Shown: piece after piece, positions 12,001-58,700 of the stretch
How positions within the stretch are numbered: position 1 is the stretch's first letter
How the letters are laid out: the number at the start of each line of letters is the position of its first letter
Assembly: GCA_030704615.1 (NCBI GenBank)
Contig: CM060731.1
Span: forward strand, 67,022,001 to 67,086,000
Direction: 5' to 3'
DNA from: Takakia lepidozioides
Taxonomy: Eukaryota > Plantae > Bryophyta
DNA: 64,000 nucleotides
Program-made: the position numbers and the translations under genes
Notes under the pieces: generated by a model
The model's database searches: none
The model's input: only the letters and a program-made list of their open reading frames with translations
What the model was told of the DNA's origin: nothing

Positions 12001-14997
12001 ATAGTACAGCCTGTTTAATATGTTGCGTTCAGTAATGTTGTTTCTGGATTCTTGGTTCTAGATAGATGACATGGAATTTTCTGTGACACATTGCTTATGC
12101 TCATTGACTGCAATATGCCATGAATGGCTGAGACCTATTTGCTGTCGTCAGTGTTGAATTTGTTGTAATTTGTCTCTTAAGGTCATTGTAAGGTACTCAA
12201 TTGCAGTTCCAAATGGTTGGCTGATGCTCTACACACCACATTGTTTTGGGGGGGGGAGGATGGATGTTTCTCAGCTTTGCATGGCTTGAGCTGATTAGCC
12301 ATCGAATGTTCATGCCTAAGCTTTTGCTTAGCAACTCGCAGAAGGGATGGCCTTTGTTTCAGCGCTTGTTGGTTGCCCTGTTCAAGTTTATGGAGCCCTA
12401 CCTGCGAAATGCTGACCTGAGTGATCCGGTGTGGTTTTTGTTCCCACATGATGTTCCCAGTAAGGATGTGGTTGGCGTGGACACCGTTTAAGGGTGTCTA
12501 GGGATGGACAGCAGAGACATTGTTTCCAAAGGCTGTGGGTTGTGAGGATTTGTTAAAGGGTCATGGCAGTGTTATTGGTTCTGTGAGATGTAGGTATACT
12601 TGAATTAAGCTTGGCTGTACCCTTACCACTCTGTACCCATTCTAACCGGGTGTTGGGGCTGGCAGGTGCGGCTGCTGTACAAGGGCACACTGCGGGTATT
12701 ACTGGTTCTGCTGCATGACTTTCCTGAGTTCTTGTGTGATCATCACTTCAGTTTCTGTGATGTCATCCCACCCTCCTGCATTCAAATGCGTAACCTTATT
12801 CTCAGTGCATTCCCTCGCAACATGCGCCTTCCTGACCCTTTTACTCCCAACTTGAAGGTACCAGCTTGATACTCTCGAATTTCTCCTAAGCTTTTGACCC
12901 CATTTACCCGTCGTTCTGTGTTAATGGGTCTCTATCTGTATATTACTTGGAGGCGAGTTTGTGTATAGGTTTCTTTAACTAGGATGGGTCTTTCTTTTGT
13001 GTTGGTTGTAATGTGGACCAAGCGGCCTTGTGTCCTATTCTTTCTTCAGGAGTGTTTACAGTTGACTACAATGGGGTTTTTCTTTTTTTCTGGTTATTAG
13101 GTGGATTTACTGCCAGAAATAAGTCAAGCACCGCGCATCCTATCGGATGTTGAGTCAGCATTGAAGAACAAGCAACTGAAGGCTGAAGTGGATGATTATC
13201 TGAAGGTTTGGTTTACAATTGCAATGGGGGAGTGGTTTACTCATTTCATGATTATCTGTTCTCATCACATAATGATTGACCTTTCTCTTGGCCTTGGGGT
13301 TATGTTGTCTTACTGAATCATCTGTCTGGTCTGCTGGTAGCACTAACTATCTGGTGAGGTTATTTGGTATGTACTTCATTTATTGAGTATCTTTTTCTGT
13401 GTCGCCCTTATAAATAGATTCCTGATTTTTCTTTGGGCCTGTAATTCAAATACTGAGTGCTTTTGGTCAAAATGTCTACATAACAAGTTCTGCACAGTTT
13501 CTCATCTTTTGTTTTGAACTGCAATTGCATGTGTGGTTCTAAAGGATTCTCGTACGTCTGCTTTAATAAAAAAGTGGGATCTGCAGACCCGACAACCCAT
13601 GTCCCTTCTTTCAGTGGACTTGAAGCAGCGGCTGATGCTGCCACAGCACGAGGCAGCGCCATGTGGCACCCATTACAATGTGCCCCTGCTAAATGCACTC
13701 GTTCTCTATGTTGGGATTCAGGTCTGTTTCTGCCCTCGTGAAAAAGGAGTTTAGCCTGATTTCTGATAACATCATAGTCAGTAGTGTGCCAACATAATTG
13801 TATGCACTTTATTGCAACATTTTTTGGTCCCAGTTCCAGCTCAAGCAAAGAAGTCCTTCTATTTGGGGTGAGTGCAGCTTGAGGATTGACTGCAGTTTTT
13901 TTTTCTGTGGTGCGTACCACAATGGGTGATGGTCGTGTGTCGGGAGTTTCATCTACAGAGCAGTCTTTCTGGTTTCCTTCCTCTTTTAATTGTTTCTTCT
14001 TCCCCGTGAGTTTTGTGCGGGTGCCTTTGTTTTCATCTTTGAAAGTGCTTCTACCTTGGATGTGGGTTATCCACTTTATCTTTGGTTGCCTCCCATATGT
14101 GAGTTCATAGTTTACTGTGCTCTCACATACATTATCTACACAGGCGATACAGCAGCTACAGAGCAAGACCACTCCTCAACAGCTGGCAGTTCCAACAGCG
14201 CCCATCACCCACAGTGCACCCATGGACATCTTCCAGCGCCTGATCGTTGAGCTTGACACGGAAGGCCGCTACTTGTTCCTGAACGCTGTGGCGAATCAGC
14301 TGCGCTACCCCAACAACCACACACATTATTTTTCCTGTGTTCTTCTCTATCTCTTTGCAGAGGCAAGTCAGGTAAGGCTTTTCACATGACCTGGTTTGTT
14401 CTCTGGATATAGTATAAGCCTGTCCAGAATAATATTACCACTGACCATCTATTGCACATTCTTGTGCCCAGGAGATAATCCAAGAGCAGATCACACGGGT
14501 GTTGCTGGAGCGACTGATTGTCAATAGACCACATCCATGGGGCCTCCTCATCACCTTCATTGAGTTGATTAAGGTTTTTCTGCTTGCCTTTCAGCATCCC
14601 TTAGATAATTGCTGAAGACTGATCTGTCCTGCTGTCAGGCACATCAGTTTTATTCTTGCCTGCTTAGATATTAGGATCAATGTCTCTGAAATGGAGGTAT
14701 GGTTGAGTATCTGGTAGAAAGAGTTGGGAGAATGACTAGGAATGGAAGTCCCTCCTAGCTTTTTGCCCCTGCATGTCCTGTCAAAGCTGATTCTGCTTGT
14801 CCTTTGTAGAAACCTCAGGTGGTTGGTTGGATGTGCAGAACCCACGCTATAACTTCTGGAGCCACGGATTCACACGCTGTGCCCCAGAGATTGAGAAACT
14901 CTTCGAGTCAGTGGCACGATCGTGCATGGGCCCTCCATTGAAGCCTGCTGATGATGATTTATCTGCAAGCCTTGGGGTTGAAGGAATGAAGGGTTGA
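78..14997 (+). CDS. NOT1: CCR4-NOT complex scaffold subunit NOT1, multi-exon, 5' part outside the window
   Basis: GT-AG exons splice into recognisable NOT1 peptides: [175 protein letters not shown]; stop TGA ends at 14997. Confidence 0.97.
7937..8053. repeat. Short (~55 bp) tandem duplication in a NOT1 intron
   Basis: tgccaacatttt...gtgaacataatttaat...actgctcttgcacc occurs twice in succession. Confidence 0.8.
8853..9290 (+). mobile_element. Degenerate non-LTR retrotransposon (LINE) fragment, pre-RT/RT N-terminal region, in a NOT1 intron
   Basis: Frameshifted peptides [34 protein letters not shown] and [15 protein letters not shown] match the K-A-x-G-x-D-G and W-x-x-x-x-I-V-x-L-x-K motifs of LINE ORF2. 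Confidence 0.8.
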
Positions 14998-16208
14998 AGG
15001 CAAATGAAGCTGCAGGGACTCTAGCTGCCACCTACAGACATGTACATACATCAACTGTAGAATAGGGCATCCTACCGATAGCTGACTCCTGTCCATCGGA
15101 GATTGGCACACGCCTTTCCAAGAGAGCTGTACAGCCTGGGCTTCATGACTTTCCAATGCTTTCAACCTGTCAATTGGTTTCTGGGCTGTTGTACTATTCA
15201 GGCCTGCTAGTCAGTGTATCTTGTTCTCCTGTAATTTTTTTTGCCTATAGAGCCAGTAGTTTAACGCGGAATTGTCAATTTGTAGATGACTGAGTGCCCC
15301 ATAGCAAAGGCCTCTTTTGTATACTGTACATTGTTGTCCATTAAAGTCTCATGGTATTTTCACATGCTACCAAACCACCTCATTCGTTGATTTTTTCTCA
15401 AAGTTAGACAAGTGATTAGTTTTCTGTGTGCAGCAGTCTCACATTTGCAATCTGCCAAACTGATACATCAGCACCTTATGAAGAACACACTGGTCTCTCT
15501 CATAGTAAGGCCACACACATTGGCCCTTGCTGTATTGTCTGTAAGTTGGTGGATGTGAAGCTCTTTCTCTTTCTTCTCTGATACTACAGGGCGTGTTGGA
15601 CAGGACTGGGCATGCATGGTGGATGTAAACTTGGGGTTGGTATGTTGGCTGCCCACAAAGCCTTTCTTTCTCCTGGATTGGTAACACAGAAACTGTTTGA
15701 TTTCGAAATCAAAGAATAAAATTGTTGTCATCTGAACATCATAATCTGTGCAATGTTTAGGATTAGCTCATCTAGTAAGGAGGAGGCTCTCACAGCATCA
15801 GATATGAGATTGGGACTTGGATGACAAGAAGATCCACAACAAAACATTGATTTCAATGGGCCAAAGCATCGGTGAGCCCTAAAGAATTCTTAGTTCGTGG
15901 GATTCCGGATGCAAATACTGTGTTGAGGGATAGACATTTCGTGGAGACCAGAGCTTGGTCAGCGTGCTTACTGCAGATGAATCAGGCTGGCTTGTTCTTG
16001 GAGTATCATTCATGCAATCCTGAGGTTCTGGAGGAAGATAGATAGCAAGAGTGTGGAAGAACTCTAAATCGCGTGTCTGTGTATGGCATGTGAGACAATT
16101 CAAGAGTTCTCTTAGGGAAATCCTCGACTCTAGTATTGGATATACTGCTGGGCAATTCAATCGGATTGAGAGCTTGACTGTCTGTCTACGGTATTCAACC
16201 GAGTAAAG

Positions 16209-19200
16209 ATGGAGGGGAAATGGGCAGCAGTGCTGCACCCAGTACATCTGACAGGCAGTGGTCGGCCGTTGTTACATCCAGAAGAGGTGGAGTGCCAGCT
16301 ACTGGATGGTGTGGACATGGAGCTTGAGGAAGCAGGGTCATCGCTGAGGGCCGGCTTGCTCACACTGACCACTCATCGTCTACTCTGGCTGGATGAACAT
16401 GCGAAGCAGGCGGGGGCGGTGCCCCATGGATCAGTAGGGCAGGTGTTCACACCCAAAAAGACAATCAAGACCATGTTTGCAGCACCGCGCCTGCGATTGC
16501 AAGTGTGGACCCAGAAGGATGGTCGCGCTGCTTTGCATGGGGCGCGAGCTGCCGAGGCCTCCATCATTCTCACGCTTGTGTTCCGGGGGCAGACTGGGCT
16601 TGACGCATTTATGCAGCGCTTGGGAGAGGTGCTGCAAGCCAAGGCATGGCAGGTGTCTCTCTTCCTCCTTCACCTAAGGTTTCCAATTGCGAGTTCAATA
16701 GCTGCATCTCTCTCTCTCTCTCTCTCTCCGCCCAAACAACGTCTGATGAGTCCATTCTCTCTCTCTCACTAGATTCAGTGTGTGCTTTTTCTATATGATG
16801 TATAGACCTTAAACCAAAACCCCATTGAGCTGGTGACTCGATCGTCCATGGCTGTGGTTGAGCATTATGGCGATTTGTGGCTTAGTTTCACTCCAGCGAC
16901 CGAATCCACACTAGTGTAACTCTCTTCTATCTCTACGTTTATATTGTCTTTCATGTGATTCTGACTATGATAGTCAATATCTCCCCCCACATTCACCATT
17001 AAATCAACCCGTTGCCCGGGTGATACACAAAAGGACCTTTTTGTGAATACATCGTATGTTCCATTGAGACTGTGAGTATTACTGGAACAGGTGACTTCTT
17101 TTACTGCCTGGAAGTAGGCTCAATTCAAGACCACATTGCAGGTGGATATGGCAGCATCACAAAGTAGGCCCACAACCTCACAGGAGGGCGTTTCAAGAGG
17201 CGAGGCAAGCACCAGTTTGGGAGCAACAGCTGCACACAAGCGCACAGTAGTCAGTAGATTGAACCCATCTATGGCAGGTGTGTCGGGCATTTTGAGAAAG
17301 GAGCAGGAACAGTGGGAGGAGGCAGACAAAAATTTGCATGATGCCTTTCAAGATTTAAATGCTCTTATGGTATGTTGTTTCCCTTCACTTGAAAACAAAA
17401 TGATTTGTTGATGTTTCCTCATGTAGCTATTAGCAGCATATTTAGAAACAAGTGTTCAGATATGGAAATTAGTGGTGTGGACTTTGGTGACGCTACCATC
17501 GTCTGTAGTTCAGAGCACATTTTTTTGTGCTTCTTGGAAGTCTACTGAATTATTGTTGCTGGTGAAGCATATGCGGTAACCTTCTCATTAACTCAACTGC
17601 TGCTATTAGGCATTTGGCACCTGTATTGCTCACTTGTGTGAAACCCAGGACCTCTCATGCTCACATCCTCCCTTACATATTGGAAGCGCTTAGGTACCCA
17701 GCCAGGCAAGGCCAGGCCCCCCATGCAGTTGGATAGACTTCAGAGTATCACCTGCAATGTTTGCCATGTCCATGACTTACATAAGCTTGATGCTCCTCTG
17801 TTGCTGCAATTGGAATCCCAAGACCACTTTTTCCTGTGGTCAAGTACCCTAACCATTGGCCCATGCGTTTGAAGCTGATAAATGGAGAAAGTTTTTTGTG
17901 CCATAACTACCTTCTGCCAAATCTGAATTGTCAAGTTGCGACCAGAGTACTAAGCTGTTAGTTTTCTTACATTACAGAGGGAGCCTGACTAGTGTTGGCA
18001 ATGGAGCAGAGCAAGGCAAAGGAGATGGTGACACTGGCAGAGAGAATGCGCGCTAAGCTACAGCCAGGGCAATCTGGTAAGGTGGAAGAGGAGGAGATGG
18101 GGTCAAAGCAAGAAATGCAGGATTGGTTGTTGAGTGTAGGCATTGTGTCACCCGTCACCAAAGAGTCTGCAGGCGCTCTCTATCATCAGCAGTTGTCTCG
18201 TCAGGTGCATCTCTTATATAGGATTCAAATGTCTGTGAGTTTGGTACATCAATACTGGATGGTGCAACATCAATCCACTTGATTGGTTAGCGTAATGCTC
18301 ACTTCTGCAACTGAGATGCGGCCTTAAAAGCCCCCATATAGTTCTCTTGACACAGAGAGCTCCTTCGTTGTCTCTCTCTGGCCCAATCAATTGTGGGAAT
18401 GAATAACTTTTTGTAAGGTCCATATAATTGGCATAGCTGTAGGGCTTTCTGTCTCCTCATGGTATATCAAGGGCATTAGCCAAAACTTTTGTGTGCTCGA
18501 TGAATTCAGCTGGATTGAGTAAGCGGAGCAGACTGGGTTGGTGTTGGGTGGCAGCTAGCGGATTTTGTTAGAGAGCCCTTGAATAGGTCAGGAGGCATGC
18601 TTGCCATGGTGGATGCGTACTGCCTCTTCAATCGTGCCCGTGGTACAGGTAAAAATTACTTTCCACCTCTAGTACTGGAGGCAGTCGTCAAGCCTGTGTT
18701 TATGTAATAGGCACTGTGTTTTACAAACTGACACGAGGTTTGAGTGTTTGAGGAATCGGCTTTGATTGTTATTTGAAAGTTTTGGCCACCTGTATCATAG
18801 TTTGTGTGTGGGGGAAGACTAGTAATACGGTGCTCGTATATGCAATTGTTTTGGTTAGAAAACTAGTCTGGAGGATTAATGGTATCCGGTGTTCCCGTGA
18901 TACACTTGGGCTTACAATATGTCTGGACAGAACTGATATCACCGGAGGATATGCTACAGGCCTGCACCATCTGGGCAACTATTGATGTGTAAGACACCCG
19001 CATAGCCCCCTACATGAATAGTATTTGAGTTTGACACTATGTGCTGTTGGAGGTTGTATGGATTTCTTCAAATTTTTGTCAGAGAATTATTGCTGCAGTT
19101 CTACTTGGAATGAAGTAGTCGTCTCGTCTTGTTTGATAGAGAGGGAGGCCAGACCTGTTGATAACTCCAACCAGGCTAAGTCTCTAGAATCCATTCAAGT

Positions 19201-20355
19201 GGGGGTGCTTAAGGAGTGTATGTCAGCATGCTCCAAAACAGCCAATGTGGCTGTTCGGGGTGAGTTTGGCATTCCATCCTTAAGCTCCCGACGAGATGAA
19301 TTCAAGGTCAGATGGTGGGGTCAGCTGCAACATATGCCCAACACCAGATATCCTAAGTTAATCGACTCTATATCTTGGAAACAGGACCGCCCTGTCAAAC
19401 AGGCTAAGTCCTGGCAGAAGAGAGTAGAAGAGATTCTCAAGGACCTGGACCTGGATCCACAAGTCTTGACCCTGCTGGATAAATCAGACTTAGAGGCTGT
19501 AGTGTCCAAAGCCATGTCTGTTGCCATGAGATTGTCTGATGAAAATGAAGTTAGGCAGAAAACTTCCCTGAACTTGTTTCCAGTCAGTGACATGGGGGAG
19601 GACATCTTGGATGACCTCAAGGTCTACCCACTCTCGGCACTAGACTGAAATTTAAACTCAGGGCAGGAAGCCTACCTTTGACCAGCAAACAGAAGCAGAG
19701 AGGAAAGGGAGAGTGCAATTGCCCGTTGTGTGGGCAATCTGAAGACAGTATTCATTTTCTGATACACTGTCCGGGGTTCTCTCACCAAAGAGACGCTCTC
19801 TTCAACTCTATCAAGGGAATTGTGCCTGTACCCCTGTTTACCAACTTTGAAAGTCTCGAGGCTGAGCCAAAAGCCCAGGCCCTCCTGAGGCCTAGTTTTT
19901 GGGCAAATCACACACAGCAGATTGATGCTTGTGTGAAGGGATTTCTAGAGGATATCTGGAAAACCCGGATTAATTCTTTATATGAAGGCAAGTCTTACTA
20001 CCAACGTCAGCCCCTGACAGAGGTAGGTTCTGTTCCTTTTGTTCCCGCTCAAACTGGGCGCGGGGTCAATGGCCACAAGGCTACGGCAAACAACGTCTTA
20101 TGAGTACACTCTGTGGTTTCTCTGATTTTGTGTGAACATGTGGGTGTCCTTGCTGTTGCCTGGGGCATGGATGCGGGGAGCACAGACCGGTGAAATTGCG
20201 ACGTTTTGACAGTGGAGTGATGGTGATCCAATCGAAGGCCCAGAGTGATGATGAGGTTAGAATCTCTCCCCCTTTACATTCAGAAGCCAACACAGCGCAT
20301 TCTTTTCTAGCTCAAGAGAAAAGGGGAGAGATTCTGTTTGACTAGCTTAGAAGAG

Positions 20356-44995: not shown

Positions 44996-46687
44996 GTGCC
45001 CCCTAACCCACTTATTATCGTGCCAGTCAACTGCGCTGGCCTGGATGCCAGCTTCGACCCGCCAAAGCGGGCCGGCCAGGCCGGGCCGGGCAGGGCGCGC
45101 CGGGCCGCCTGCGCCCTGCGGGGTTTTGCTAGACTGGCGAAACCCTGCCCCAGTTGCTGTTCCCGCGCAAACCGTAACTTGCTACCCGCCGAGTTCCAGC
45201 CCTAACCGAGTCCGGCCCGGCCTGGCCCGGTCCGGTCCCAGACCTACCTGCAAATTTGAAGTGCGAGTCACCCGCACGGGGCAGCAGCGTTAGGGAGAGC
45301 GCAAGGGATGCGCGAGGTGCTTGAGCGATGGCGGGCAGTGTCAGTGATGAGATTGCATGTCTCGGGAGGAGTAGAATATCTCGCAGCCTCTCTGTGTCAT
45401 TCCAAGGCTGCCGAGGACGAGATTCGAGCGCTCGGTTGTCGTACTCGGAAATCACGGCTTACTGCATATACACTAATAATAAGTTATGTCATCGGCGAGG
45501 AAAGGGGGGATGGTGCGGAACGATGGAATTGCTGACTTGAGAGAGTGAAGGAGAGAGAGAAGAGACGATGTACGCAGAGCGTATGTGATGTGATGTACGC
45601 GTGATGGCAAGGTACGCAAGGTAGCGACCAAGGGAGGTAGCAGGCCTTATTAGCTGGTGGAACCTGATTGAGGTATATTGAGGTACGGTATCCGCATACG
45701 TATGTGCGGGGGATATGTACGCCGTCGTCTCTTGTCTCTTCCGCTTCCGCTGGACGGAATTTGGGGCGCTCACATGAGAGCTGTTCATTTACTCTTCGGG
45801 ACATTGAACTGGAAGAGTGTGGCGTGGATTGTGAGCTCAGACAGTGGATTCGAGCAAGTTGTGTTATATTTAGTGTAGTTGTTAGGGAGCTGCGGATCTT
45901 GTCGTTTTGGTGCGCAGGTTTTTAGCTGTGCTTTTGTGAGGTGGATTTTCTTGAGAGAGAGAGTACGCTCTCCGTTATTTGTGGACAGGCGGTGCCGCGA
46001 TTATCTGCAGATGTCTTGGTCCTGATGATGAGCTGCGACCGTATTTGATCTTTCTGTTTTGTAACGTTTGGTTGCTGCTGCTGGTCTGCCCGTGTTATGC
46101 TCTGGATGGACTCTGAAATCAGAATTGATAGAAGAGGATCCTGGTCTTGTTTGCTCTATCCATTTCTATTAAGGCGGATGAGGTGCGGTTGGAATCAAGG
46201 TCACAAATGACTCGTGAGGACCGCAATCACGTCCTGTCCCAGATGTTTAGGTGTGCAGCAATGGAATTGAAGCTGCTTCTGAATTTCCAAGCAGCACAAA
46301 GATTGTGTTTTTGAAGGCCTTGAACTTTAACTTCAAAGCGCTCTGGCAGCCGATCTCTTCTCGTGTCATGGCCTCTAAAGTTTGACACTACAGAATGATT
46401 ACGAGGCCACATTCAGCATCGCTTGAACTGATTACGTGTTTCTACTGTATGTATCCTTGGTTTACTATGTGAGGCAAACAACAATTTTTTTGTTGTCTCA
46501 ATCGAGTTTCTCGCTGTCTTCCGAGCATCAGTCAAGCAGTCACGGATAAAATTGCATTGTAGCTACTTGAACTTTATCAGGAGACGAAATAAGATTGGAA
46601 AAGGTGCTCTGAGGAAGTACCGTAGTGCACGCTGCAGGGGAGTAGTGATATGTACGAGTTGCAAAAGCAGGAGTGGTAGAAAGTATC

Positions 46688-49600
46688 ATGCTAAGCTGGG
46701 CGCGCAAGATGACGCAGCGGCGCTTGTTCTGGGTGGTGGGAGCTATGGGCCTTCTGTGCCTCTCGGTTCTAGGTGCTTCGATGGCCAACTTCAGTGCCCC
46801 CCGATATTGTGATTTCTTCAACAATGAGGCCTGTAATACTGGGCCTCCACCTCCTCATCCGTCCCCACCCCCTCGGGAATACAGTGATGAGGAACTGGCT
46901 TCGCTCGTCCTCGCGAAAGATATTCTGTCGCGACCGCAGCCTGCCATGGGAAAAGCAAAACTTGCGTTTATGTTCTTGACGGCGGGACCACTGCCAATGG
47001 AGGCAGTTTGGAGTAAGTTCTTCAAGGTGAGAATTTGCAGGGCAAGGTACTGGATTTGGTTAGCTGGGGCATGTTAGGAGAGAGGATTTGAGAGGATAAC
47101 GCTGAAGATGGCAATCAGGGGCCAGGGAAAAGGCCCTGTTTGAGATCGTCTGACAAGTATGTCCTGCCGTGAAAGCAAATTTCTTGAATTTTTGTCGGTG
47201 AAGTTGCGACTCTCTGCAACTGGATTGTTGGAGTACACTGCTCCTTTGGCCTTATAGAGGTTTCCAGTATTCCTTGGATAGTCCTCCCCTTTCCCCTGAC
47301 AGTTTGATAGGAGAAGCAAGGGAACAAACGAGGAGAATGCCAACAGGGTAGATTGGGTGGGGGCAATGTGCACTGGTTGATTCAAGGTAGGATCAGCGCA
47401 GATGAGTGATGCAATGAGTGATGCATCGTTGCTTCTGGCGTTTGTGTCTGCTGTCTGCTTCTGAATTTTGTATACGGTGAAGGATAGTGTGTTACCTTCT
47501 GTTACCAGGGGCATGAGGGCATGTACTCCGTGTATGTTCACGCATCTGAACGCGAAAGGTTGAAGAGCGAGTGGAAAAGCCAAGTCTTCATAGGCCGCGA
47601 GATCCGCAGCCAAAAGGTAATCCTGTGCTCCTCCTGCCTTGTTTTGAGCTGCTCAAGATCTAGTCTGCATGCTTTCTATTACCTCAATGCAGTGCACATA
47701 TGCATCAGTCAATCATATCCACGAGCAGAGCAATGCAGGGGCAGCACAATTTGTAGAACCTTCCAGTAGGTGCAAAGGAGCACATGCCATGTTCTGAATA
47801 GCAGTGACTGTTGAAAGCACTGTGGGAGATTACTTTTTTATGCTGGTTTCTAGAATGCTGATTGACTTCAGTTGCCAGCTAAAAGCAAAATCTTGAATGT
47901 TGGCCCTGGTCATAGATTCGTGGGTCACTGCCTTCAAAGCCCTCATGCAGTCATACAAGCTTATTTGCAGAGGAGAGTGTATCTTAGTGGGGTTACAACA
48001 TTGATGTCGTTGTCATTCCTGCTTTTCTTCTTCCAATCCTTTACTTTTTATGTAGTGGAGGGATCATCCTTGGCTCTGGCCACAAAGTAAAGTCTCTCAT
48101 CTGAGGTAGTTTTACAGTGCATTATTTCCATATTACATCACAACATAAAGAGATCTTAAATTATAGTTGTAGTGATGAGCTCGGTGTCTAACGGTGTGGG
48201 TAATGTAAAACCCACAGATTTGGCAAGGACCACCTAGAGAGTAGGCCCTTTTTGGGGTCTGCTTTAGAGCTTCAGTGGTTTGTGTGAAGTGGAGAATTGA
48301 GTAGGAGTGTCAATATAACTTGGTTTGTTGCATGGCTTCAGCTGTAACTGAAACTGTGTGTTGGATGAGCAGGTATTTTGGGGGAAGATTGAGATGGTGG
48401 ATGCAGAAAGGAGGCTTCTTGCTAACGCACTCAGGGATACCGACAACCAGTATTTTGTTCTTGTGTCTGAATCGTATGGACTGACTTATTCCTTTTTCTT
48501 CTCAAAACCTGAAATGGGGAACTGTTAGAGGTCATGATTTTCTCAGTTTGTGCTTGTTAGCTTTGGCTTCATAAGACAATCAGTTGCCACAAGGTCTTGT
48601 GGCAAAATATTAGTGCGACATGTTCTCTTTCCTTTATGTTGACACTTTTGACATGAGTTGCAGTTCATATGTCAGTCAAGAGCTTTCGCTCTCTCCCTCT
48701 CCTCTCTCTCTCTCTCTCTCCCTCCAGTGTGTTCAAGCTTTTGCTACCTCTCTTACTCACAAGTAAAACTCGGGAATGAGAAATGACAATGTTCAGTGTT
48801 CAAATCAATACTCAGCCTTGGTAGGTTGAGACTTAAGACAGTGATTAGCCAAACTGCACTATCGTGTGATGATCAACTACTCTGAAGCCCTGTGGAGAGG
48901 GGAGAGACCTGAACTGTGTAGCCACATGGCTCTCAAATATGCTCTCTATCTTGGACAGGATAGTACTAATGCACGTTATGGGGTTTGAACAAACTATTGT
49001 TGGTATTGAGTGGCCACATACAATTGCTCGTTCCGCTTGAGGCTGATGTCTTTTCTGGCATAATGTACACCTCATCCCAGGGAAGCGCGTTGATACTAAT
49101 ACCTTTGCTATCTATGAGCACAGTCAAGACGCAAGTTAATTTTGCTTGTCTCCTTGGCATTGGTGGCAGATGCATACCGCTCTATGACTTCAACTACATT
49201 TACAACTATCTTCTCGGTGCTAACATGAGCTTTGTGGACTGGTAAGACTTTCTGATTTGGACCATTTCCTATTAGGATGGTTTATATAGTGGGCCTAGGC
49301 TGGCCGCGCAAAAAACATGTGGGCCTAGTCATGGCTGCCCAGCTACTCTGTTCTTTAATGGAGTCAGACATTTTTTTAGACATTTCCACAGATAGTCTGT
49401 ATTGAGTGGTATGGAGAGTTGGTGGTAGATGTTAGTGAAAATAATGTTCAGGAGTCAGCATTTTACATTTCCAGTACTATGTCAACATTGGCATGTTTAC
49501 TTGGGATGTTGCATCAATACATTGATTTTTCAAAGGGACTGCTTTAAAAGGAAAACAATCTACAAGCAGGACATCAGGCTAGAAGTGTTTCTCGTTTTTG

Positions 49601-52600
49601 GGCTCCATCAGCTCCAGACTGTTTGAAAATGGTTCACAATGTAGTTCGTTTACATATATCTCATCGGAAGCATCCAATAGATGGCCCAGTGGTGCACAAA
49701 GCCGCCTTACAAGTGGTTACTTTATGTGTCACCTCGGGACTTTCAAGTCCTTTGGGGAGGTTTGGGCAACCATGGTACCCTGGTTACAGCCATTAGTAGT
49801 GTCCGCCTTCCCCAACGGAAGGCAGTAGTCTTTCGGGGTGATGAGACACCTTAATTTACACTCGCTTCAGCATGCCTCTACCTTACCTCTTTATTCATCG
49901 CATTTGCTAACTTGATTTTTCTAGTGTTTTATCAGCTTTGACGATCCAGGGCCACATGGGCAAGGGCGCTACTTGGACAGCATGATGCCTGAGATAAGGA
50001 GAGCGGATTGGAGGAAAGGGGCACAGGTATTCTTCTAACCTTGATCACATCTATGGATATTCACTACATGAAGCACTGCCGTTTTCTATTGGTCAAATTA
50101 AGACCCCAATATATGGAGATGATTTGTGTATGGGGTTGGGAGCTCGTTTCTGACGTAGGTTTCCCTCTCCACAGTTCTTCCCTCTGTTTTGTGAAAGGGC
50201 TCACATTTACCTGTGATTAAATGCCACTTTGGCTATTGGTGTGTGCAGTGGTTTGCGGTCACTAGGAATCACGCCTTACTGATTGTCGCTGATCATCTCT
50301 ACCATGAGAAGTTCCAAAAGTTTTGCAAGGTATCTGTCTACCCTTCACATGTGGACCCTGTATTTCTAACTAGTGTTGGAGGTGTCAAGGCTATAGCCTT
50401 TGCACGACACTATGAGAACAGAACGGGATGGGTAGCTCAATGGTAGAGCACCCCACTGGAATGGGGGAGGTCCTAGGTTCAATCCCTAGCCCGACCACAC
50501 GCCAGTGGTTTTCCAACATGGTATCAGAGCCAAGGTTGGGGCGGTGGTCAGAATGGGTGGGCATTAGCATAAGGGCTATGCCTTGAGGGGGAGTGTTGGA
50601 GGTGTCAAGGCTATAGCCCTTGCACGACACTCTGAGAACAGAACGGGACGGGTAGCTCAATGGTAGAGCACCCCACCGGAATGGGGGAGGTCCTAGGTTC
50701 AATCCCTAGCCCGACCACACGCCAGTGGTTTTCCAACAACTAGAAGATGACCGGTCTGCTTATTAACCGACAGAAGGGGATGCATATGTATCTGAGACAG
50801 ACTGTGTTTGTGTTTGTTGTCTGGTGTCTTTACTACGACTCAACGGTGGTAGGATACTGTACACAACTCACTACACGTGTCATCCTGTCAACATCGACAA
50901 AGAGCATAGAGCTAAGTTGGCATACATCCCATGCATTCATATGCTCCAAACTGGAGATCTTCCTTGTGGTGTCCCAGGTGCCTTGAAGACTCCTGAACGT
51001 TCCATTACAAGGTCCTCTCTTCAGTTGCAGGTGGAAAGCCCACCACCCATTGTCATGGCTTTAGTTCTGGTTTGGAAAGGTTAGATATACACCTCAAGCA
51101 TTAACCTTCACTGTTAGTTCACACTATGGTTCCAAGTCTGGTGAGTTTAAGAGAGTTGCTCAACAAATAGAGAATCTCGTCCAGGGAAGTGCTTATGTAT
51201 CTGCACCTCATCAGTGCTGATGTAACCGGTCTTGATCACAACTTGGGGCTCCTGGCATTGGAGTTGGACATGTTACTGCATGTCAGTGATAACAAGTGTC
51301 ATTTTGTCAGTAGCACTGATTGTGAGTACTGATTGACGTTTGGTGGCATTGGTCGGTGCAGCCTGGGAATGAAAATCGCAACTGCTACCCCGACGAACAC
51401 TATGTCCAGACCTACCTGCATGTATGATCTGTATTCATCACACTCACAGTGCATTTGATGTAGCAGACAAAGTGTGCACCTTGAAGATGTAGTCTGATCA
51501 AAGAAAAGGGATGAGCTTCAGTAAAAAGTACTTCAGAAAAGCATGCATCCCTCTGGCTGGCAAGAAGCTCTAGGCAAATAAAATTCAAGATAAGGAGTGT
51601 TGATTTCATCAATGTTCTAAAGGGTGACAGTCACAATTCTGATTTATAGAGGTCCAAAAATCGGTTTCTTGATGAAACTCTCCTTTCCATTCCTTGTCCA
51701 GTTACAAGCAGGCGAACTCAATCGGCTTGCTTCCGCATCGTGCTCTATGTGAGATGAGTTGTGGGTGGGTGTACATCAAGTGTTAAAAGACCCACCCCTC
51801 TACCTGTGTAGTGCTCCTTAATATTAGAACCTAAGCCACAGCCCTTCTTAAGCAGATTAACTTGGTAAGATGAGTTACCACTAAAACTGATATATATATG
51901 TACACGGCTTCTGATGTATGAGAATTTGTGTTGATTACGTACCGATGTGTGACAGCAACAATTCTTGTCTGCTCACAGATTGTGGACCCGGGTAACTTAT
52001 CCAATTGGACAGTGACGCATGTGGATTGGTCGGAGGGGAAGTGGCATCCCAAGTCATACGTGACTGGAGACATCACTAAGGCCACGCTAGCTGCAATTCA
52101 GGTACACAAAACTGCAGACAGTACTCTTCCCACCAACTGTGAATGGCACTACAATGTAAATCCAATAAGGTTCATCCAGTTGTAATGCTGATGTCAATAT
52201 TACAGCTCTACATGTGAATTCTCTCAAATTTTTGGCTTTGGTAGGGCTGCTTCATGGGTTTGAAAGCTAAGTGAGAAAGTGGCTGCCATGCAGAGTATCG
52301 ACCAGCATGTCCATGTCAGCAGCGATGGCCATGTATGTGGTATCTCCACCTGTCTGTTGTGCACACATTTCTCTCTCCCTTTGTTTGTATTCTCTCTAGC
52401 CTGTTGTCACTACAGTACAGTCACAGTCACTATTCACATCTGTGGTAATCAGGGCCTACATCAGCAGTGGTTAAGTGAATGTTTTGCTCTCTAACATACT
52501 GTGCATGTGAGCCCTTGATTTTACAATGAAATCAACCGTAGTAGTTGAACACCGGCTCTCTACCAGCACTGTTGGTGATTTCGGCAGAATTCTTACTCCG

Positions 52601-52792
52601 ATTAGAATTCCCAGTATTCTGAAAGACTGTGAGCTTGGGTGCGTGCAGCAAATAAAAACTGTGAGACCATGCACATGGAATGGGCAGCAACGACCCTGCT
52701 TTCTGTTTGCCCGCAAGTTCACAGCAGAGACAGCTGATGCCTTACTGGAAATGCTACCAAAAGTGACATGGCCAAGATCTAAAGTGGCTTGA
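46688..52792 (+). CDS. Core-2/I-branching beta-1,6-N-acetylglucosaminyltransferase-like protein (DUF266/BC10-like), type II membrane protein, multi-exon
   Basis: N-terminal TM helix, KLAFMFLTAGPLPME, YSVYVHAS, VFWGKIEMVDAERRLLANALRD, SESCIPLYDF, WRKGAQWF, NCYPDEHYVQT, NWTVTHVDWS, CFLFARKF; stop ends at 52792. Confidence 0.93.
50426..50497 (+). promoter_or_regulatory. tRNA-like module (Pol III A and B boxes) in the 5' LTR
   Basis: A-box TAGCTCAATGG, D-arm GCTC/GAGC, stem CCCCA/TGGGG with a 6-nt loop, T-arm CTAGG-TTCAATC-CCTAG, acceptor-like GGATGGG/CCCGACC-A. Confidence 0.88.
50646..50717 (+). promoter_or_regulatory. tRNA-like module (Pol III A and B boxes) in the 3' LTR
   Basis: Same cloverleaf as 50426-50497, with acceptor GGACGGG/CCCGACC and loop CCGGAA. 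Confidence 0.88.
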
Positions 52793-55749
52793 AGTAAGCA
52801 ATTTTTGTGGAGTCCATCTGTATGTGGTCCATCTAGGCAATGGAGTGAGTTACGGATGGAGATGCTGCCTAGTGTTTCCTGAATTTGATGCTGATGGAGT
52901 AACCTCTTGTTTCCTCACAGCGAACCAGCTTGAGATGGTAAAGGTAACTTGTCCAATGTGTCAGATCATAAAGAAGAGTCTTCATCATTCCAAGATCAGG
53001 GAGACTGAGGGATAGAGGGCAATGTCAGGATGAGTTTGAAGCGGCATTTTTCTCATGACATTTGGGCAGCTGATCCAAGCTGCCCTTCCGATTTCCAGCT
53101 TCTGTCAAATCAACCCTATTTGAATTGGGGTGTGGTTGCATACTATATTTGCAACTAGAAAAGTCCAGCTTGTCACAGGATACCATAGACACAGCAATGT
53201 TTCTACTTCTCTATTCCCATCGCTATGAAGACCTTCACTCATGGTCTGGTAGACCTGAAGTCCAGTATGGAAGATAGGAAGAGCTCACTTGGCATGCTGT
53301 CGGTTTGTGGTCATAGACCTCAAGCTCATCTGGCAAGATAGAAAGGCAACATTGCTTACTGTAGGCTGCCTTTAACCCGACCCTGCATTCAATACAACGA
53401 TATGTTGAGAAAGTTTGAAGATTATTGATGGCTGCGACTAACCCACCATCTCATTTCTGTGTGTTCTGCATGTGTGTTGCTGAGCTGTTGGGTATTTAGG
53501 AGACTGATTTCTATTCCAAAAGCTGTTCTCCCAGCTAAATTCTTTCAAATTTGGGTTATTTATCCTTGAAAAGAAAGGGTTTTGTAAGGTCAACTCTTCA
53601 AAATTGGGAGTAGGAGTCTTACTAGCCCATAACTTTTTGAAGTTTGCTTGTTTAATTTTCGTTTCATTAGATGAAACTGTTGAATTGAAAATCTTGGAAA
53701 AGAAGTTCGTCATTTTGAACTCTTTCAAATTTGAATCGGCTATTCACGAAAGTCAGGAGTCTCAGCAGCTAAATCTCTCTTAACCTAGGTATTCGTTACT
53801 TCCTCTCTCATGTGTATCTCAATGTATGTAGTAGAGGTGGTTGTCTGCAGCTGGCCTACATGCAGGTTAAGTTACTACAATTGCCTCGGGAAAAGTTGCA
53901 GCTGGTCCAGTCCAGCCTCTGTTGGACGTGACTTAACCCTTGGTTGAACTTCCAGTTGGGAAATAGAAGTGTTTCTTTTAGGAAGAAAGATGTATAGATG
54001 TCTGTTGATGGTGTACAAAGTGGGAGTGAGAGGCATCTTGGATGTTCCTCTGTGAACTGCAAAGCAGTTGATGAATTTGTCTTACCCATCCCGTAGAGGA
54101 AGGAGAACGTCGGTAACAGCCAAAACTTGAGATTACACGCCAATGGACTTTTTTTTCAAAAATATCTTATGCAAATATAGTCTACACCAGTGATACTTTT
54201 TCAAAAGGTCATAAACTTACAACCCTGCATTTTTATGCATTAAAATGGAAGCTTAAGTGGACATCTTCTAATGTCCGTAAAACAGCAATGTGGCTGTCCA
54301 AATTTTATCCCAACAATAACTCGAATTAAAAATTCTTCAAGTACCTAGACATTAAAGGTGTCCGTTAAGTGAACCGGATGGAGGGCGAGTGCGGCCAGTT
54401 CGGCCAAAAGACGCTATGAATGTCAAAAGGCGGGGCGGGCAAAGTACAAGCAAATAAAACACAGGGCGAAACTCAAAATCGCGTGAAAAAGGACGGAGAA
54501 CGCTTTTGATCCCCTGACTTCCGCATGTGCATCCACGGGCCCCACACCATGTGAAGGAAGTGAGACGCAGGTCCAAGGCTACAGCAAGGGAAGCTGTCCC
54601 TATTGCCCACGAGGAAGGAGGAGGTGGCAGGGGCACCTGGCATGGGGGCCCACGTTGCTGAGGCGCTCACCCGTCCCCACTTTTTGCCGCTCGTGCCCAT
54701 AGGCGCTTACTGCCCACCATCATGATATGTGGGGATGGATCATAGGGGCAAATAGAGGTTTATTAGGGTCCGGTTGACCCAACATCCTCCTTTTTATAGG
54801 TGGGTTGGCTATAATGGGTGACATCCAAGATTCTACACCGCTTTGAACCCAAACCACATGTAAGGCGACTTGTTCCCTAACCATTGGGTATCTATTGGAT
54901 TCAACTATATTTTCGATTAGTGGGGCTGCACGTTGCTCCGCTAGTAACGACTTTTGAGAGAATGTTCGAGTTTTATAAGAAGTTCAACATTTATCTCATT
55001 GATTGGAAATATATGTGAAAAACAATAGGAATAATGTGAGAACTTAATGCAAGCCTGCAATGTGACGATATTTTTTGCAGAGTTGGCTCTTTGAGCTTTG
55101 TTGAGAAAAAGGGGGTATTGGATCAACGGGTTACTTAACCCTCACACATTGGCCTACGGCCATTATAAGGTATTTAACTTTCAAATGGGAGGTGGTAGCC
55201 TTGTGAAGGCCCATTTCCTCCTAGTGACTTATTTCTTATTTCATCCATCCATCTATACTCATTCATCCAAAAAAAAAATTCGCTTTGTCTATCGTTAAAC
55301 CGTTACACTCATAGTTAAATTAGGGGTTAGTTTAGATGCTGGCTTCATCTTGGCCGTCCGATGAATCTATGGCCGGAAAGAGGCGCCGCGTGCTTAGCCT
55401 ATAGCGCCTCGCCACGCGGCAGCTTACGAGCCGCTCTAGGGTTAGTGTATAACCGGCGCTGACAAGAATCAGGGTCTTTGTGTACACCAGTGATCGTATG
55501 TGGAAAAGTGTGTGAAGCTCTGTACGCGTCAAGAAACCTGTATGTTGTCGTGTGAAAGATTCTCCTCTTGCGAGATTGCATGTTTTTCTTTGCTTCGCCC
55601 TGGTCTCATTTCACTCATTTAAGAGGATATGAGCATATGCTCTCGAGTTGTATTTGTGGTGGAGTCTCGCCGGATAATTTCTAGGGGTTTCTTTTGTCGT
55701 GCACCTTGAGGATGTTTCTTTTGTGGAGGATGTTCTCAAGGTGGCTATG

Positions 55750-58700
55750 GCGGAGCAAGTGAAGGCTACGCCACAGTCATGGTGGGCGGATAAGGCCCAA
55801 GAGATTGCTATCTAGCAACCAAAGGATGCATCTCCTACCTCTAAGCCTGGTGTACCCAAGGTTGCAGTAACTGAGGACAATTAGGAACCAAATGTTGGAC
55901 CTACAGTTACCGAAGGAGAGAGACGGAGGATCCAGCGATTTCTAAGGACTTACAGAAATTTTTTCGAAGGTTCTACAGGTATAGTGACATGGAGAGGTCT
56001 TTGATCCAGTCACGGACTATGGAGTTGTTCGAAGCTAGATTGGTGGAGTTGTCAGGTGGGGAGTATGCCTCGGCAACAGTGAAGTTAGCTAAGAATGATA
56101 TCTATGGCAATTGGACAGAAAGAAAGATGTGTGGGGACTATCGGCATGTGAACCATTAGACTAAGTCCGATAGATATGTCATGCCAACTGCAGAGGAGAT
56201 ATTTGATGCCATTGGGCATGCGAAGGTGTTTAGCACATTGGACTTGCGATCCGGTTACCACCAGTTGCCAATCAAAGAGGCTGACAAGCAAAAGACGACA
56301 TTCTGGGGGATTGACCGACATATGAAGGATTGCTTGTGCCAATGGCAGTTCCTACCGTTTGGATTGAAAAATGCTCCTATAGAGTTCAGAGGGTAATGGG
56401 TAGGATTCTTACGGGGCTAGACTTCGTCCGATGCTACATTAATTGATTACATGATCATCATCTTTAGTGCTATGATTGAGGAGCACGAGAGACACCTTCA
56501 GATGGCGTTTGAGAGCACATGGGTTGAAAATATTGCACTCCGGGAAGCGCAAGTTCTCCACAACCAGATTGAGTATCTGGACCACGTGATATACCCTGGA
56601 GGATTGGGTGTTCAAAGGACCTGTTGAGGCCATTCCACGCATTCCACGCCCCGTAGATGTTAGCAAGAGTTCGTGCTTTCATGGGGTTGACAAACTATTA
56701 TTGACGGTTTGTCAAGGGATTTAGCAGCATTACAAAGGCTCTTACCGAGTTGACCAAGGTGGATCATGAGTGGCAGTGGGAGGAGGAGTAGGATGAAGCC
56801 TTTGAGGAACTCAAGGCTCAATTGACTTCTGCACCTATTTTGAGGCGGCCTATTCGGGGGCGACCTTCCAGCTACATACGGATTGGAGTATGTTGGGGAT
56901 TGGAGCAGTGCTCACACAAGTGGATGATGAGGGAAGAGAGTTCATAGTGGCCTATGCTAGCCGCTCGAACAATGATGTTGAGGCGAAGTATAGATCATAT
57001 GAAAGAGAGTGTTTAGCTGGAGTATGGATTGTGGCACATTTCAGATGTTAGTTCCATGGCAATCTCTTCACCCTTGTCACGGATCACCAACCATTGAAGT
57101 GGTTTATGGAGTCAAACAAGCTTACAGAGAAGCTTGCACGGTGGGCACTTATGCTTCAAGAGTACAACTTTTAGGTGGTGCATCGAGCCGGTATAGTCAA
57201 TCGGGATGCAGATGGATTGAGTCATAATCCATGCACGAGCAAGAATGATGATACTGGATCTCGGTGGCGATGAGGAGATGGTCCCAGGATGTCATGCATC
57301 TGCATTTTTTTGCATTCTAGCAACATGGGAGCTCAAGCTGGTCCATCCCATAGGATTGGTCATGTAGATGGTGTGCATGACGATCCGGAGATCAGTGAGG
57401 AGCTTGGTGGTACTAAGGATGTGTATAAAGATGCAGCAGTGTTGGCATACCTTCGTACCGGAGAGACAACAGCCAGTGTGACTGCTAAGGAAAGAGATCG
57501 AATCCTACAACGAGCCAAGAGGTTCAAGTGGGAGGGGACTCACCTACTCCGTGTATGGGAGGATGGATGAGTGAGGATTGTGCCTCACCCAACACAATGA
57601 GTGCGATTGGTACGCCATGCCCATGAGGAATTGGGACATTTTGGGGTGCGACGCACTCATAGTTTGCTACAAGGACAGTATTGGTGGCGGGGCATGCACA
57701 CAAATGTGCAGCAGCTAGTGGAAGGGTGCATGGTGTGTGATAGAGTGCAAGCTTCTTTCAACGCAACTACCCACAATTGCATCTTTACCCATTATAGGTT
57801 TGGGCTATCGTTGGAGTCTTGACTTCGCAGGCCCATTGCCACTAACAATTCGCCATAACAAGTATGTGTTGGTGATGGTGGAACGTTTCTCCAAATGGAT
57901 TGAACTGGTGGTATCGCTTGACAAGGCAAGTGAGGGGGCCGCGTATGCATTCTTAGATCAAGTGCTTAGCCAATTTGGTGTTCCAGCCGAGGTACTCACG
58001 GACCAGGGGAGAGAGTTCTTGGGGGAGTTTCAGGTTTTGTGCGAGCAAGCCTTGATAGATCACCGCACTACTTCTCGGAATCATCCCGAGGCTGATGGCT
58101 TGGCGGAGAGAGATGTTCAAACAGTCAAGAGGGGTTTGCATAAGTATGGTTTGCAGAAGGGACACCTAGGAAATTGGGACCTTCAGCTACATTGGTTGGC
58201 TATGGGCTATAGATTCAGCAAACAAACGTCACTTGCCTCATTCTCACCTTACTTTCTTCTCTTCGGCCGGGAGCCAGAGTTGCTTGCATCTATTCGCAAG
58301 GAGGCTTAGTAGTCCTCAATCTTGATTATCCAGATGTATGGACACAAACGTGTGACCAACGGTCAGAGTTGTTCAATGCCTATGCCTATGGCTTTTGATA
58401 ACCTTGTTATTGCCCAACACCGAGACACATTGAGGTATGTCACTTTACGTGGATGAGGATATCGACCGGGTGTTCGGAGATTCAACCCTGGGGACTATGT
58501 ATACTTGCAGCAGACAGCACCAACGACCGTGGATGTCACAGCAGGGCGTATGTTTCTAAGGATCAGGGAGGTGTTGCCTTCAGGAGTGTTGATTATGGAG
58601 GGTCGGGATGGCATACGGTATGGAAAGACCATGTGCGCAATTGTGCGTTATGTCACCTTCCCCATATGGATGAGATGATAGATCCCAACCTTGCAGTCGT

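Follow-up and report, generated by a model that had tools for sequence, protein, structure and literature searches.

A 64,000-nucleotide stretch of the Takakia lepidozioides genome, referred to below in its full length as the window, contains within an intron a short element in which a tRNA-like sequence occurs in each of two direct repeats. This raises the questions of what kind of mobile element is present, how it relates to those already described, and which polymerase might supply the RNA for its mobility. Our analysis points to positions 50374-50738 being an intact Helenus-type TRIM (TRIMp3) in a land-plant genome, a reading to which we assign a probability of about 0.9. All features given below lie on the forward strand.

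Anatomy of the element

The borders can be read directly from the sequence: the same five letters, ACTAG, occur at 50369-50373 and again at 50739-50743 as the 5' and 3' target-site duplications (TSDs). Between them lie two 145-bp direct repeats of the form TGTTGGA...TCCAACA, the 5' LTR (50374-50518) and the 3' LTR (50594-50738), the TG..CA termini of which fall within a 7-bp terminal inverted repeat; contigs derived from other copies begin at 50594 and stop at 50738. Directly 3' of the first LTR is a primer-binding site (PBS) of the plant initiator-Met tRNA type, TGGTATCAGAGC (50519-50530, or to 50532 with a following CA), which opens a G-rich, non-coding internal domain of just 75 bp (50519-50593). 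This domain closes with a directly legible polypurine tract (PPT), GAGGGGGAG (50585-50593), that adjoins the 3' LTR, giving a total of 145 + 75 + 145 = 365 bp. No Pfam-bearing ORF runs across the element; the ORFs found are spurious, and one of 103 aa spanning the element had no relatives in a database search. The sequence-only reading had described a complete TRIM in which both LTRs carry a tRNA-derived module, and this structural interpretation proves correct, with the TSD, the LTRs and their 7-bp inverted repeats, the PBS, the PPT and the internal domain all found where it had placed them.

Two further features of the LTRs bear on transcription. A TATA motif with a putative promoter role occurs at 50392-50395, inside a near-palindrome (50382-50405) and 34-31 nt upstream of the start of the tRNA-like module, with a second copy at 50612-50615. 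Additionally, a run of four T residues, which had likewise been correctly reported, is present at 50509-50512, 12 nt 3' of the module and 6 nt before the end of the 5' LTR. Its counterpart in the 3' LTR is at 50729-50732, and these are the only T4 runs in the whole element, with none between them. The first is possibly a leaky Pol III terminator; it is also part of the TTTTCCAACA LTR end common to Copia-type elements.

Further, the PPT is embedded in a predicted hairpin (50567-50622), in which internal positions 50567-50586 pair with positions 50604-50622 of the 3' LTR, such that the loop holds both the PPT and the 5' end of the LTR. The minimum-energy folds of three different sequence contexts all contain it; its local z is -3.42, and none of 200 shuffles folds equally well. 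The same design has been reported for the Sire lineage of Ty1/Copia elements, where inverted repeats in the 5' part of U3 base-pair with counterparts 5' of the PPT, so that the latter comes to lie in the loop (Benachenhou 2013, PMC3601003), and hence we dropped the hairpin as a candidate new feature. Sire elements differ in being autonomous, several kb in length and equipped with Pol II LTRs, and the likeness is one of described design.

The tRNA-like modules and their place among known elements

A degenerate tRNA-like module occupies half of each LTR. The module of the 5' LTR (50426-50497, 72 nt) scores 59.2 bits and that of the 3' LTR (50646-50717) 56.6 bits against Rfam RF00005, for which the gathering score is 29 bits, and ARAGORN detects both, in each case as a "tRNA-???" with a 2-nt anticodon. 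At minimum energy the module folds into a cloverleaf whose anticodon loop has 6 nt and whose acceptor stem contains one A.A mismatch. It contains an A box, TAGCTCAATGG (50433-50443), and a B box, GGTTCAATCC (50476-50485); these motifs occur at only two places in the 64 kb, both of them in the modules, as against 0.01 expected, which excludes a chance origin of the boxes. The covariance model, the gene finder and the fold thus agree with the earlier description of a 72-nt cloverleaf with A and B boxes filling half an LTR, and also with its view that the short anticodon loop and mismatched acceptor stem mark a non-working tRNA. A functional tRNA gene was rejected on the same grounds, there being no assignable anticodon. 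A pattern covering this module and its Selaginella counterpart discussed below found no match in bacterial and archaeal genomes or in viral contigs.

TRIMs with tRNA-derived LTR sequence were described in 2024 under the name Helenus (TRIMp3), with a published length range of 311-1263 bp and a TSD of 5 bp in plant and fungal members (Kojima 2024, PMC10886601). The features that define Helenus structurally are all present here, namely a non-coding body, tRNA-derived boxes in the LTRs, a PBS, a PPT and a 5-bp TSD. By that class definition (PMC10886601), the earlier placement of the element as Helenus-like, analogous to Cassandra and rare rather than unprecedented, was sound. Since it belongs to this known type, the element widens the class by one plant host and one family rather than founding a new class.

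That study includes a single plant Helenus, Helenus-1_SMo from the lycophyte Selaginella moellendorffii (PMC10886601), with which the element was compared by three short pattern searches and, for the remainder, by eye. In the searches, three pieces of the Helenus-1_SMo consensus matched at 21 of 22, 23 of 26 and 28 of 31 bases. The two share a tRNA-like module in each LTR, a 5-bp TSD, an LTR that begins TGTT.GA and ends TTTTCCAACA with a T4 run just ahead of that end, a PBS of the form TGGTATC(A/G)GAGC, a PPT ending in GGGGGAG, and a hairpin bracketing the PPT/LTR junction. Within the module, 53 of 72 positions (~74%) are identical as judged by eye on the printed consensus. This identity is unevenly distributed: the A-box/D-arm region (19/20 by eye), the variable/B-box region (20/21 by eye) and the T-arm/B-box region are nearly identical, whereas the anticodon arm retains about 3 of 13 positions and, like the hairpin stems, is unrelated in sequence. 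The stems of the module appear, again by eye, to be kept through compensatory changes. The two elements also differ in the lengths of the LTR (145 bp here versus 120) and internal domain (75 bp here versus 85), in the region upstream of the module, which is 20 nt longer here, and in having hosts from different plant divisions. Membership in one family was rejected under a criterion of about 80% identity over most of the length, given the ~74% identity of the module, the unequal lengths and the divergence of the anticodon arm and flanks; close matching is confined to the box regions and the LTR-end/PBS junction. The suggestion that the element represents an undescribed family in its lineage is accordingly plausible, as the one plant Helenus on record plainly belongs to another family.

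Beyond plants, the Helenus elements of rust fungi (such as LTR-1_PGr, LTR-1_PSt and Helenus-3_PGr) have in common with the present element the tRNA-like LTR module, the 5-bp TSD, an inferred Copia partner and, by eye, a PPT bracketed by an inverted repeat with one arm at the internal 3' end and the other in the 5' part of the LTR. However, their LTRs are longer, they show no sequence similarity to it beyond the boxes, and most fungal Helenus prime from a tRNA anticodon loop rather than, as here, from the 3' end of the initiator-Met tRNA. A parallel outside the class is provided by the plant TRIM Cassandra (Kalendar 2008 and 2020), which is also non-autonomous, forms tandem arrays and holds in both LTRs a small-RNA gene module together with Pol III boxes and terminators, and whose conserved PBS is the same 12-mer, TGGTATCAGAGC, a sequence used by plant Copia elements and badnaviruses as well. 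In Cassandra the module is a 5S rRNA with boxes A and C instead of a tRNA, and the length is 565-860 bp; further, Pol III transcription is reported to have been demonstrated for it, unlike for Helenus. Identity with Cassandra was rejected because an Rfam scan of the window gives tRNA only and no 5S rRNA. The same scan finds no hammerhead family at gathering score in the window, against a retrozyme, and the LTRs, PBS and PPT exclude a tRNA-derived SINE (SINE2), which would consist of one tRNA-related head and a tail that is LINE-derived or A/T-rich.

Copies, insertion site and putative partner

In contigs from a DNA run of the same organism (X1), the summed word depth over the element is 13,560-19,992 as compared with 45 in its flanks, i.e., about 300-440 times higher, although summed depth is not a copy number. 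Altogether 332 contigs were placed in this comparison. At the exact ends of the LTRs, DNA contigs break off into unrelated flanks, eight of them continuing beyond 50738 into differing sequences, and contigs from RNA runs similarly begin at 50594 or exit at 50738 into unrelated sequence. The element is thus one of roughly hundreds of copies in the genome, one of which is known as a full sequence, and the depth and the unlike flanks indicate an interspersed multi-copy family as seen through contigs rather than through the TSDs of individual copies. This already makes it unlikely that further copies with TSDs of their own are lacking from the genome. Rearranged contigs are also present.

The copy in the window lies in the sense strand, 39 nt inside a GT..AG intron (50330-51361) of an expressed Branch/GT14-type gene, the flanking exon of which (50246-50329) is Branch/GT14-like (Pfam PF02485). 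Spliced RNA contigs in runs X5 and X6 join 50327 to 51360 (cut +2), and hence the element has inserted into the intron without stopping correct splicing. The insertion is not recent, as the LTRs are identical at 141 of 145 positions (97%); two of the 4 differences are CpG-to-TpG changes in the 5' LTR. Before insertion, the empty site would have read ...TTCTAACTAGAAGATG...; no contig in the runs examined skips 50374-50743, though contigs are unable to show the absence of such an allele.

An autonomous partner of the Copia type, as the sequence-only reading had proposed, is supported indirectly by the 5-bp TSD, the initiator-Met PBS, the Sire-type PPT hairpin and a 22-nt LTR-end/PBS junction identical to that of elements encoding Copia gag and integrase. 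This junction was found at 38 metagenome loci, all of them AT-rich LTR elements, either Copia-type or decayed, with no tRNA-bearing TRIM among them. Copia gag-integrase remnants are present in 12 of these loci; one (L022) encodes Retrotran_gag_2, gag_pre-integrs and rve domains directly after the junction, and another (L027) shows ...GGGAG followed immediately by TGTTAGA at the start of its 3' LTR. The partner would be expected to share with the element both the junction of ...TTTTCCAACA with TGGTATCAGAGC and the hairpin with the PPT in its loop.

Transcription and competing explanations

We infer that the element is transcribed by Pol III from its 5' LTR. The A and B boxes would act as an internal promoter directing initiation at about 50426, and the polymerase would have to pass the weak T4 run at 50509-50512 before copying the PBS, the rest of the internal domain with its PPT, and the 3' LTR as far as the T4 run at 50729-50732 or beyond. 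The predicted RNA, about 307 nt long, would carry an 87-nt R region repeated at both ends and a U5 of 6 nt. An autonomous Ty1/Copia element would then supply the proteins that package it, reverse-transcribe it from the initiator-Met tRNA and insert it into the genome, with 5-bp duplications as the result. The T4 run that separates the promoter from the PBS may, however, terminate many Pol III transcripts ahead of the part needed for mobility. RNA-run contigs do include the stretch from the T4 run through the PBS into the internal domain (X5 record 11 and X6 record 16, spanning 50463/50468-50601 at depths of 101.7 and 42.9, with the host mRNA at 43.5 and 19.6, respectively), but such contigs reveal neither the polymerase nor the RNA ends. 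The signal per copy is small, with a depth of about 100 for roughly 140 internal regions as compared with about 8 for one host-gene intron, and copies inside Pol II transcripts could be its source.

The most serious rival retains the Helenus-type structure but derives the mobilisable RNA from Pol II, through the LTR TATA motif or read-through from host genes, reducing the tRNA-like module to a passenger inherited from an earlier SINE or tRNA insertion, or to the source of a short dead-end Pol III RNA only. We regard this as unlikely, yet deserving of weight. The TATA motif, at -34 relative to the module, could serve Pol II equally, a T4 run precedes the PBS, this copy sits in the sense orientation in a transcribed intron, and the element appears in RNA-run contigs at low per-copy depth; moreover, according to Kojima, the use of Pol III has yet to be validated for any Helenus (PMC10886601). 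However, no T4 interrupts the path between the two LTR runs, and Cassandra, with the same layout and PBS, reportedly uses its 5S promoter for transcription. When the moss-type module is set against that of Selaginella, the regions around the A and B boxes are nearly invariant (19/20 and 20/21 by eye, with pieces checked by the pattern searches) alongside a scrambled anticodon arm, as expected of a promoter under selection.

The same comparison can be turned to a different end, in that the acceptor, anticodon and T stems seem by eye to be kept by compensatory changes between the two families, where a promoter would need the boxes only. On this account the modules would be mainly RNA structures, serving packaging or stability or allowing RNase P and RNase Z to carve a terminal-repeat RNA out of longer host transcripts, and the position of this copy, and probably of many others, inside Pol II transcription units would fit. 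We consider it very improbable, as only two sequences are compared, independent capture of related tRNAs would look compensatory too, and cleavage by these enzymes would extend to the module in the other LTR. Neither processed ends nor circular joints turned up among the contigs, which are in any case unable to show them. Least credible, to the point of being nearly negligible, is that no retrotransposon is involved and that a decayed tRNA gene and its flank were tandemly duplicated locally with a 220-bp period. The LTR-internal-LTR layout does amount to 1.66 copies of such a unit and rearranged contigs do occur, but this reading is already contradicted by the TG..CA repeat ends in a 7-bp terminal inverted repeat, the perfect 5-bp duplication on both sides, the canonical PBS directly after the first repeat and PPT before the second, and the hundreds of copy-equivalents that stop exactly at the same borders.

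A bolder extension of the preferred Helenus-type reading, which we offer as a rather long shot, is that plant Helenus constitutes one ancient bryophyte-lycophyte lineage, kept for hundreds of millions of years beside an initiator-Met-primed Copia clade, with selection acting on the cloverleaf stems and the PPT hairpin as well as on the two boxes. In such a lineage, the tRNA-like fold might be an RNA-processing or packaging signal, with RNase P/RNase Z cuts setting the RNA ends and intronic copies yielding mobilisable RNA without a promoter of their own.

A survey of 48 genomes had recorded no TRIMs in the moss Physcomitrella (PMC4717578). The present element extends Helenus/TRIMp3 in plants from a single Selaginella family to a second, distant lineage, in which it is abundant. 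Elements of this type raise the number of predicted tRNA genes and distribute Pol III-type promoters across introns, and the close match of the boxes as against the scrambled anticodon arm across two distant plant families provides comparative support for the boxes as the selected part. With its many copies and the public RNA runs of its host, this family offers a practical system in which Pol III-driven LTR retrotransposition could be tested directly for the first time outside Cassandra.

Structure of the element and its tRNA-like module

Direct reading of the plus strand places the 365-bp TRIM between two copies of the TSD ACTAG (50369-50373 and 50739-50743). Its 145-bp LTRs, each running TGTTGGA...TCCAACA, form a direct repeat at 50374-50518 and 50594-50738 on the same strand and, compared pairwise, are identical at 141/145 positions. 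The 75-bp internal part between them (50519-50593) starts with TGGTATCAGAGC and ends with the purine run GAGGGGGAG. The TSD, both LTRs, the PBS, the PPT and the short interior are thus each present where the sequence-only reading had placed them. The only two T4 runs of the element lie at 50509-50512 and 50729-50732, likewise on the plus strand.

Each LTR carries one tRNA-like stretch of 72 nt. The Rfam tRNA model scores the two modules at 59.2 and 56.6 bits (gathering score 29), and ARAGORN reports both as tRNA-???, with an anticodon of two bases. The proposed cloverleaf is borne out by the minimum-energy fold, in which the anticodon loop has 6 nt and the acceptor stem a single A.A mismatch. 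Within the 64-kb window, the A-box and B-box motifs are confined to these modules, with ~0.01 chance matches expected. The observation of a TRIM with tRNA-bearing LTRs is confirmed and its interpretation supported, with Pol III use as its putative part.

Relation to Helenus and the PPT hairpin

Helenus comprises TRIMs with tRNA-derived LTR sequence, a PBS and a PPT; its fungal and plant members have 5-bp TSDs, and with Cassandra and Ajax it makes up Kojima's TRIMp3 grouping (Kojima 2024, PMC10886601). The window element displays every structural feature that defines Helenus, in agreement with its earlier Helenus-like placement. The sole plant member in PMC10886601 is Helenus-1_SMo of Selaginella, with a 120-bp LTR, an 85-bp internal part and a 5-bp TSD. 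Three pieces of its consensus, obtained from the supplement of PMC10886601, served as short patterns for a search of the window and matched at 21/22 (D-arm/A-box), 23/26 (variable/T-arm) and 28/31 (LTR-end/PBS) positions. Compared by eye, the 72-nt modules of the two elements are identical at 53 positions, with 19/20 in the A-box half, 20/21 in the B-box half and ~3/13 in the anticodon arm, and the acceptor, anticodon and T stems are preserved through paired changes. Further, both elements have the LTR start TGTT.GA, the LTR end TTTTCCAACA and a PPT ending in GGGGGAG. Part of the likeness past the PBS (..GGTTGG) probably reflects complementarity to the same primer tRNA (plant initiator tRNA), not common descent. 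The two are separate families, since their lengths and remaining sequence are too different for the window element to belong to Helenus-1_SMo.

Among the matches listed from the full-text literature, none describes Helenus from a bryophyte, and TRIMp3 in the retrotransposon sense occurs only in Kojima's own paper (PMC10886601); a survey of 48 genomes recorded Physcomitrella as being without TRIMs (PMC4717578). The type of element is already known, and the novelty is that of a new family or host.

A strong plus-strand hairpin pairs 50567-50586 of the internal part with 50604-50622 of the 3' LTR and encloses in its loop both the PPT and the 5' end of this LTR. It forms in folds of 69-, 127- and 307-nt contexts and has a local z-score of -3.42, with 0/200 shuffles folding equally well. 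By eye, the published consensuses of Selaginella and rust-fungus Helenus families show, like the moss-type family, an inverted repeat around the junction of PPT and 3' LTR. In Helenus-1_SMo this bracket has a stem (GTGTTCAGCTTAG / CTAAGCTGAACAT) unrelated to that of the window element. The rust-fungus families LTR-1_PGr (GTAACAAGCA/TGCTTGTTAC), LTR-1_PSt (GTATCAAGCA/TGCTTGATAC) and Helenus-3_PGr (CACTGTGGATTA/TAATCCACAGTG) also have it, LTR-1_PGr and LTR-1_PSt differing by a compensatory change. Kojima's Helenus paper (PMC10886601) makes no mention of the hairpin. It is of a kind already described, because a PPT-in-loop stem of exactly such design is reported for Sire (Copia) LTRs by Benachenhou et al. 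(2013, PMC3601003), who urge a systematic search for such stems.

Family size and insertion into the host gene

Contigs of four public runs were placed on 48000-53000. In X1, a DNA run of the same organism, word depth is 45 in the unique flanks versus 13,560-19,992 summed in the element's three bins; 332 contigs were placed, many 85-99% identical and 156 only partly on 48000-53000. Because summed word depth is no copy number, as the tool itself warns, family size is taken only as an order of magnitude, namely hundreds of LTR equivalents. Depth over the internal part is ~3x lower than over the LTR (6,420 at 50568 versus ~20,000 at 50660), which suggests solo LTRs. Eight contigs exit right after 50738, each into different flanking sequence, and X6, an RNA-like run, has a contig that passes from 364 nt of unrelated sequence into the element at 50594 and another that exits at 50738. 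Hence, the family borders are the LTR ends read from the window copy, and the anticipated further genomic copies are seen as contigs breaking at these ends into unlike flanks. The window copy is a member of a minor variant, since both its LTRs have A where the family majority has G (50660; TAGCTCAGTGG). The plant-type PBS and a 'plant metagenome' run that also contains the element point to a plant host.

The host gene, a Branch/GT14-like gene at 46673-52800 (plus strand), was delineated from RNA contigs and Pfam PF02485, with exons from the RNA contigs at 48371-48473, 49170-49240, 49935-50023, 50246-50329, ~51362-51421, 51979-52098, 52291-52332 and 52649 onwards. A spliced contig in two RNA-like runs has GT..AG joints including 50327 to 51360 (cut +2), so that the intron is 50330-51361; the exon directly upstream (50246-50329) matches Pfam Branch PF02485 (Core-2/I-branching enzyme family). 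The element sits 39 nt inside this intron in sense orientation; host splicing is intact, and two runs show the gene to be expressed with correct splicing. The preceding intron contains a second short interspersed repeat (49670-50003), with DNA contig depth up to 872 versus 45 in the flanks and many contigs, also from RNA runs, breaking at ~49731-49737 and 49771 into unlike sequence.

All four LTR differences (50399, 50412, 50429 and 50457 versus 50619, 50632, 50649 and 50677) are one-directional, the 5' LTR having T or A where the 3' LTR has C, and two of them are CpG-to-TpG changes. This pattern is consistent with methylation-driven decay confined to the 5' LTR, or with gene conversion of the 3' LTR. 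The LTR divergence (K = 0.028; four sites only) corresponds, at typical plant rates, to insertion roughly one to a few million years ago.

A probable Copia partner and putative transcription of the element

The 22-nt junction of TTTTCCAACA followed by TGGTATCRGAGC was sought in JGI metagenome contigs and matched exactly at 38 loci, which represent AT-rich (26-39% GC), plant-like LTR elements; the tRNA module is present in 0/38. Copia gag-integrase remnants occur in 12 loci, and L018 and L022 have an intact 681-aa Copia gag-protease-integrase ORF, which in L022 begins 28 nt past the junction and encodes Retrotran_gag_2, gag_pre-integrs and rve in Copia order (Pfam). L027 reads ...GGGAG followed by TGTTAGA at the start of its 3' LTR, with a near-matching 5-bp flank, and several groups of near-identical copies of one family are seen (e.g., L015, L019, L023, L025, L026). 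The conserved PBS of Cassandra is the same 12 nt, which are also in use by plant Copia elements and badnaviruses. Taken together, the 5-bp TSD, the junction/PBS shared with Copia-coding loci and the PPT-in-loop hairpin point to a Copia element as the probable partner, as had been proposed. Elsewhere in the window, 56000-58310 (plus strand) holds remnants of another retrotransposon, with reverse-transcriptase-like ORFs (by eye) and, from Pfam, an rve integrase core at 57737-58306; the PBS of the TRIM is absent there, the window having one PBS match in all. An ORF at 16209-16769 (plus strand) with a Vps36/ESCRT-II GLUE-type domain (PF11605) is probably a host-gene exon.

RNA runs contain element sequence. 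RNA contigs spanning 50463/50468-50601 extend from the B box through the T4 run, the PBS and the internal part into the start of the 3' LTR at depths of 101.7 and 42.9, ~2x the host mRNA; a T inserted after 50568 shows that they derive from other copies. Such contigs reveal neither RNA ends nor polymerase identity, and their shape is ascribed to assembly branch points since X7, a DNA metagenome run, has the same shape. RNA depth per copy is low, and therefore copies inside Pol II transcripts could account for the signal; further, the TATA motif of the 5' LTR (50392-50395, at -34 to -31 of the tRNA-like +1) could be usable by either polymerase. Under transcription by Pol III, synthesis would start at the tRNA-like +1 (~50426), leak through the first T4 run (50509-50512) and end at or past the second (50729-50732), yielding a predicted product of ~307 nt in which R would measure 87 nt and U5 6 nt. 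Between these two T4 runs there is no other. The T4 run of the LTR also belongs to the LTR end common to Copia elements, and integrase recognition of that end may constrain it no less than a role as terminator.
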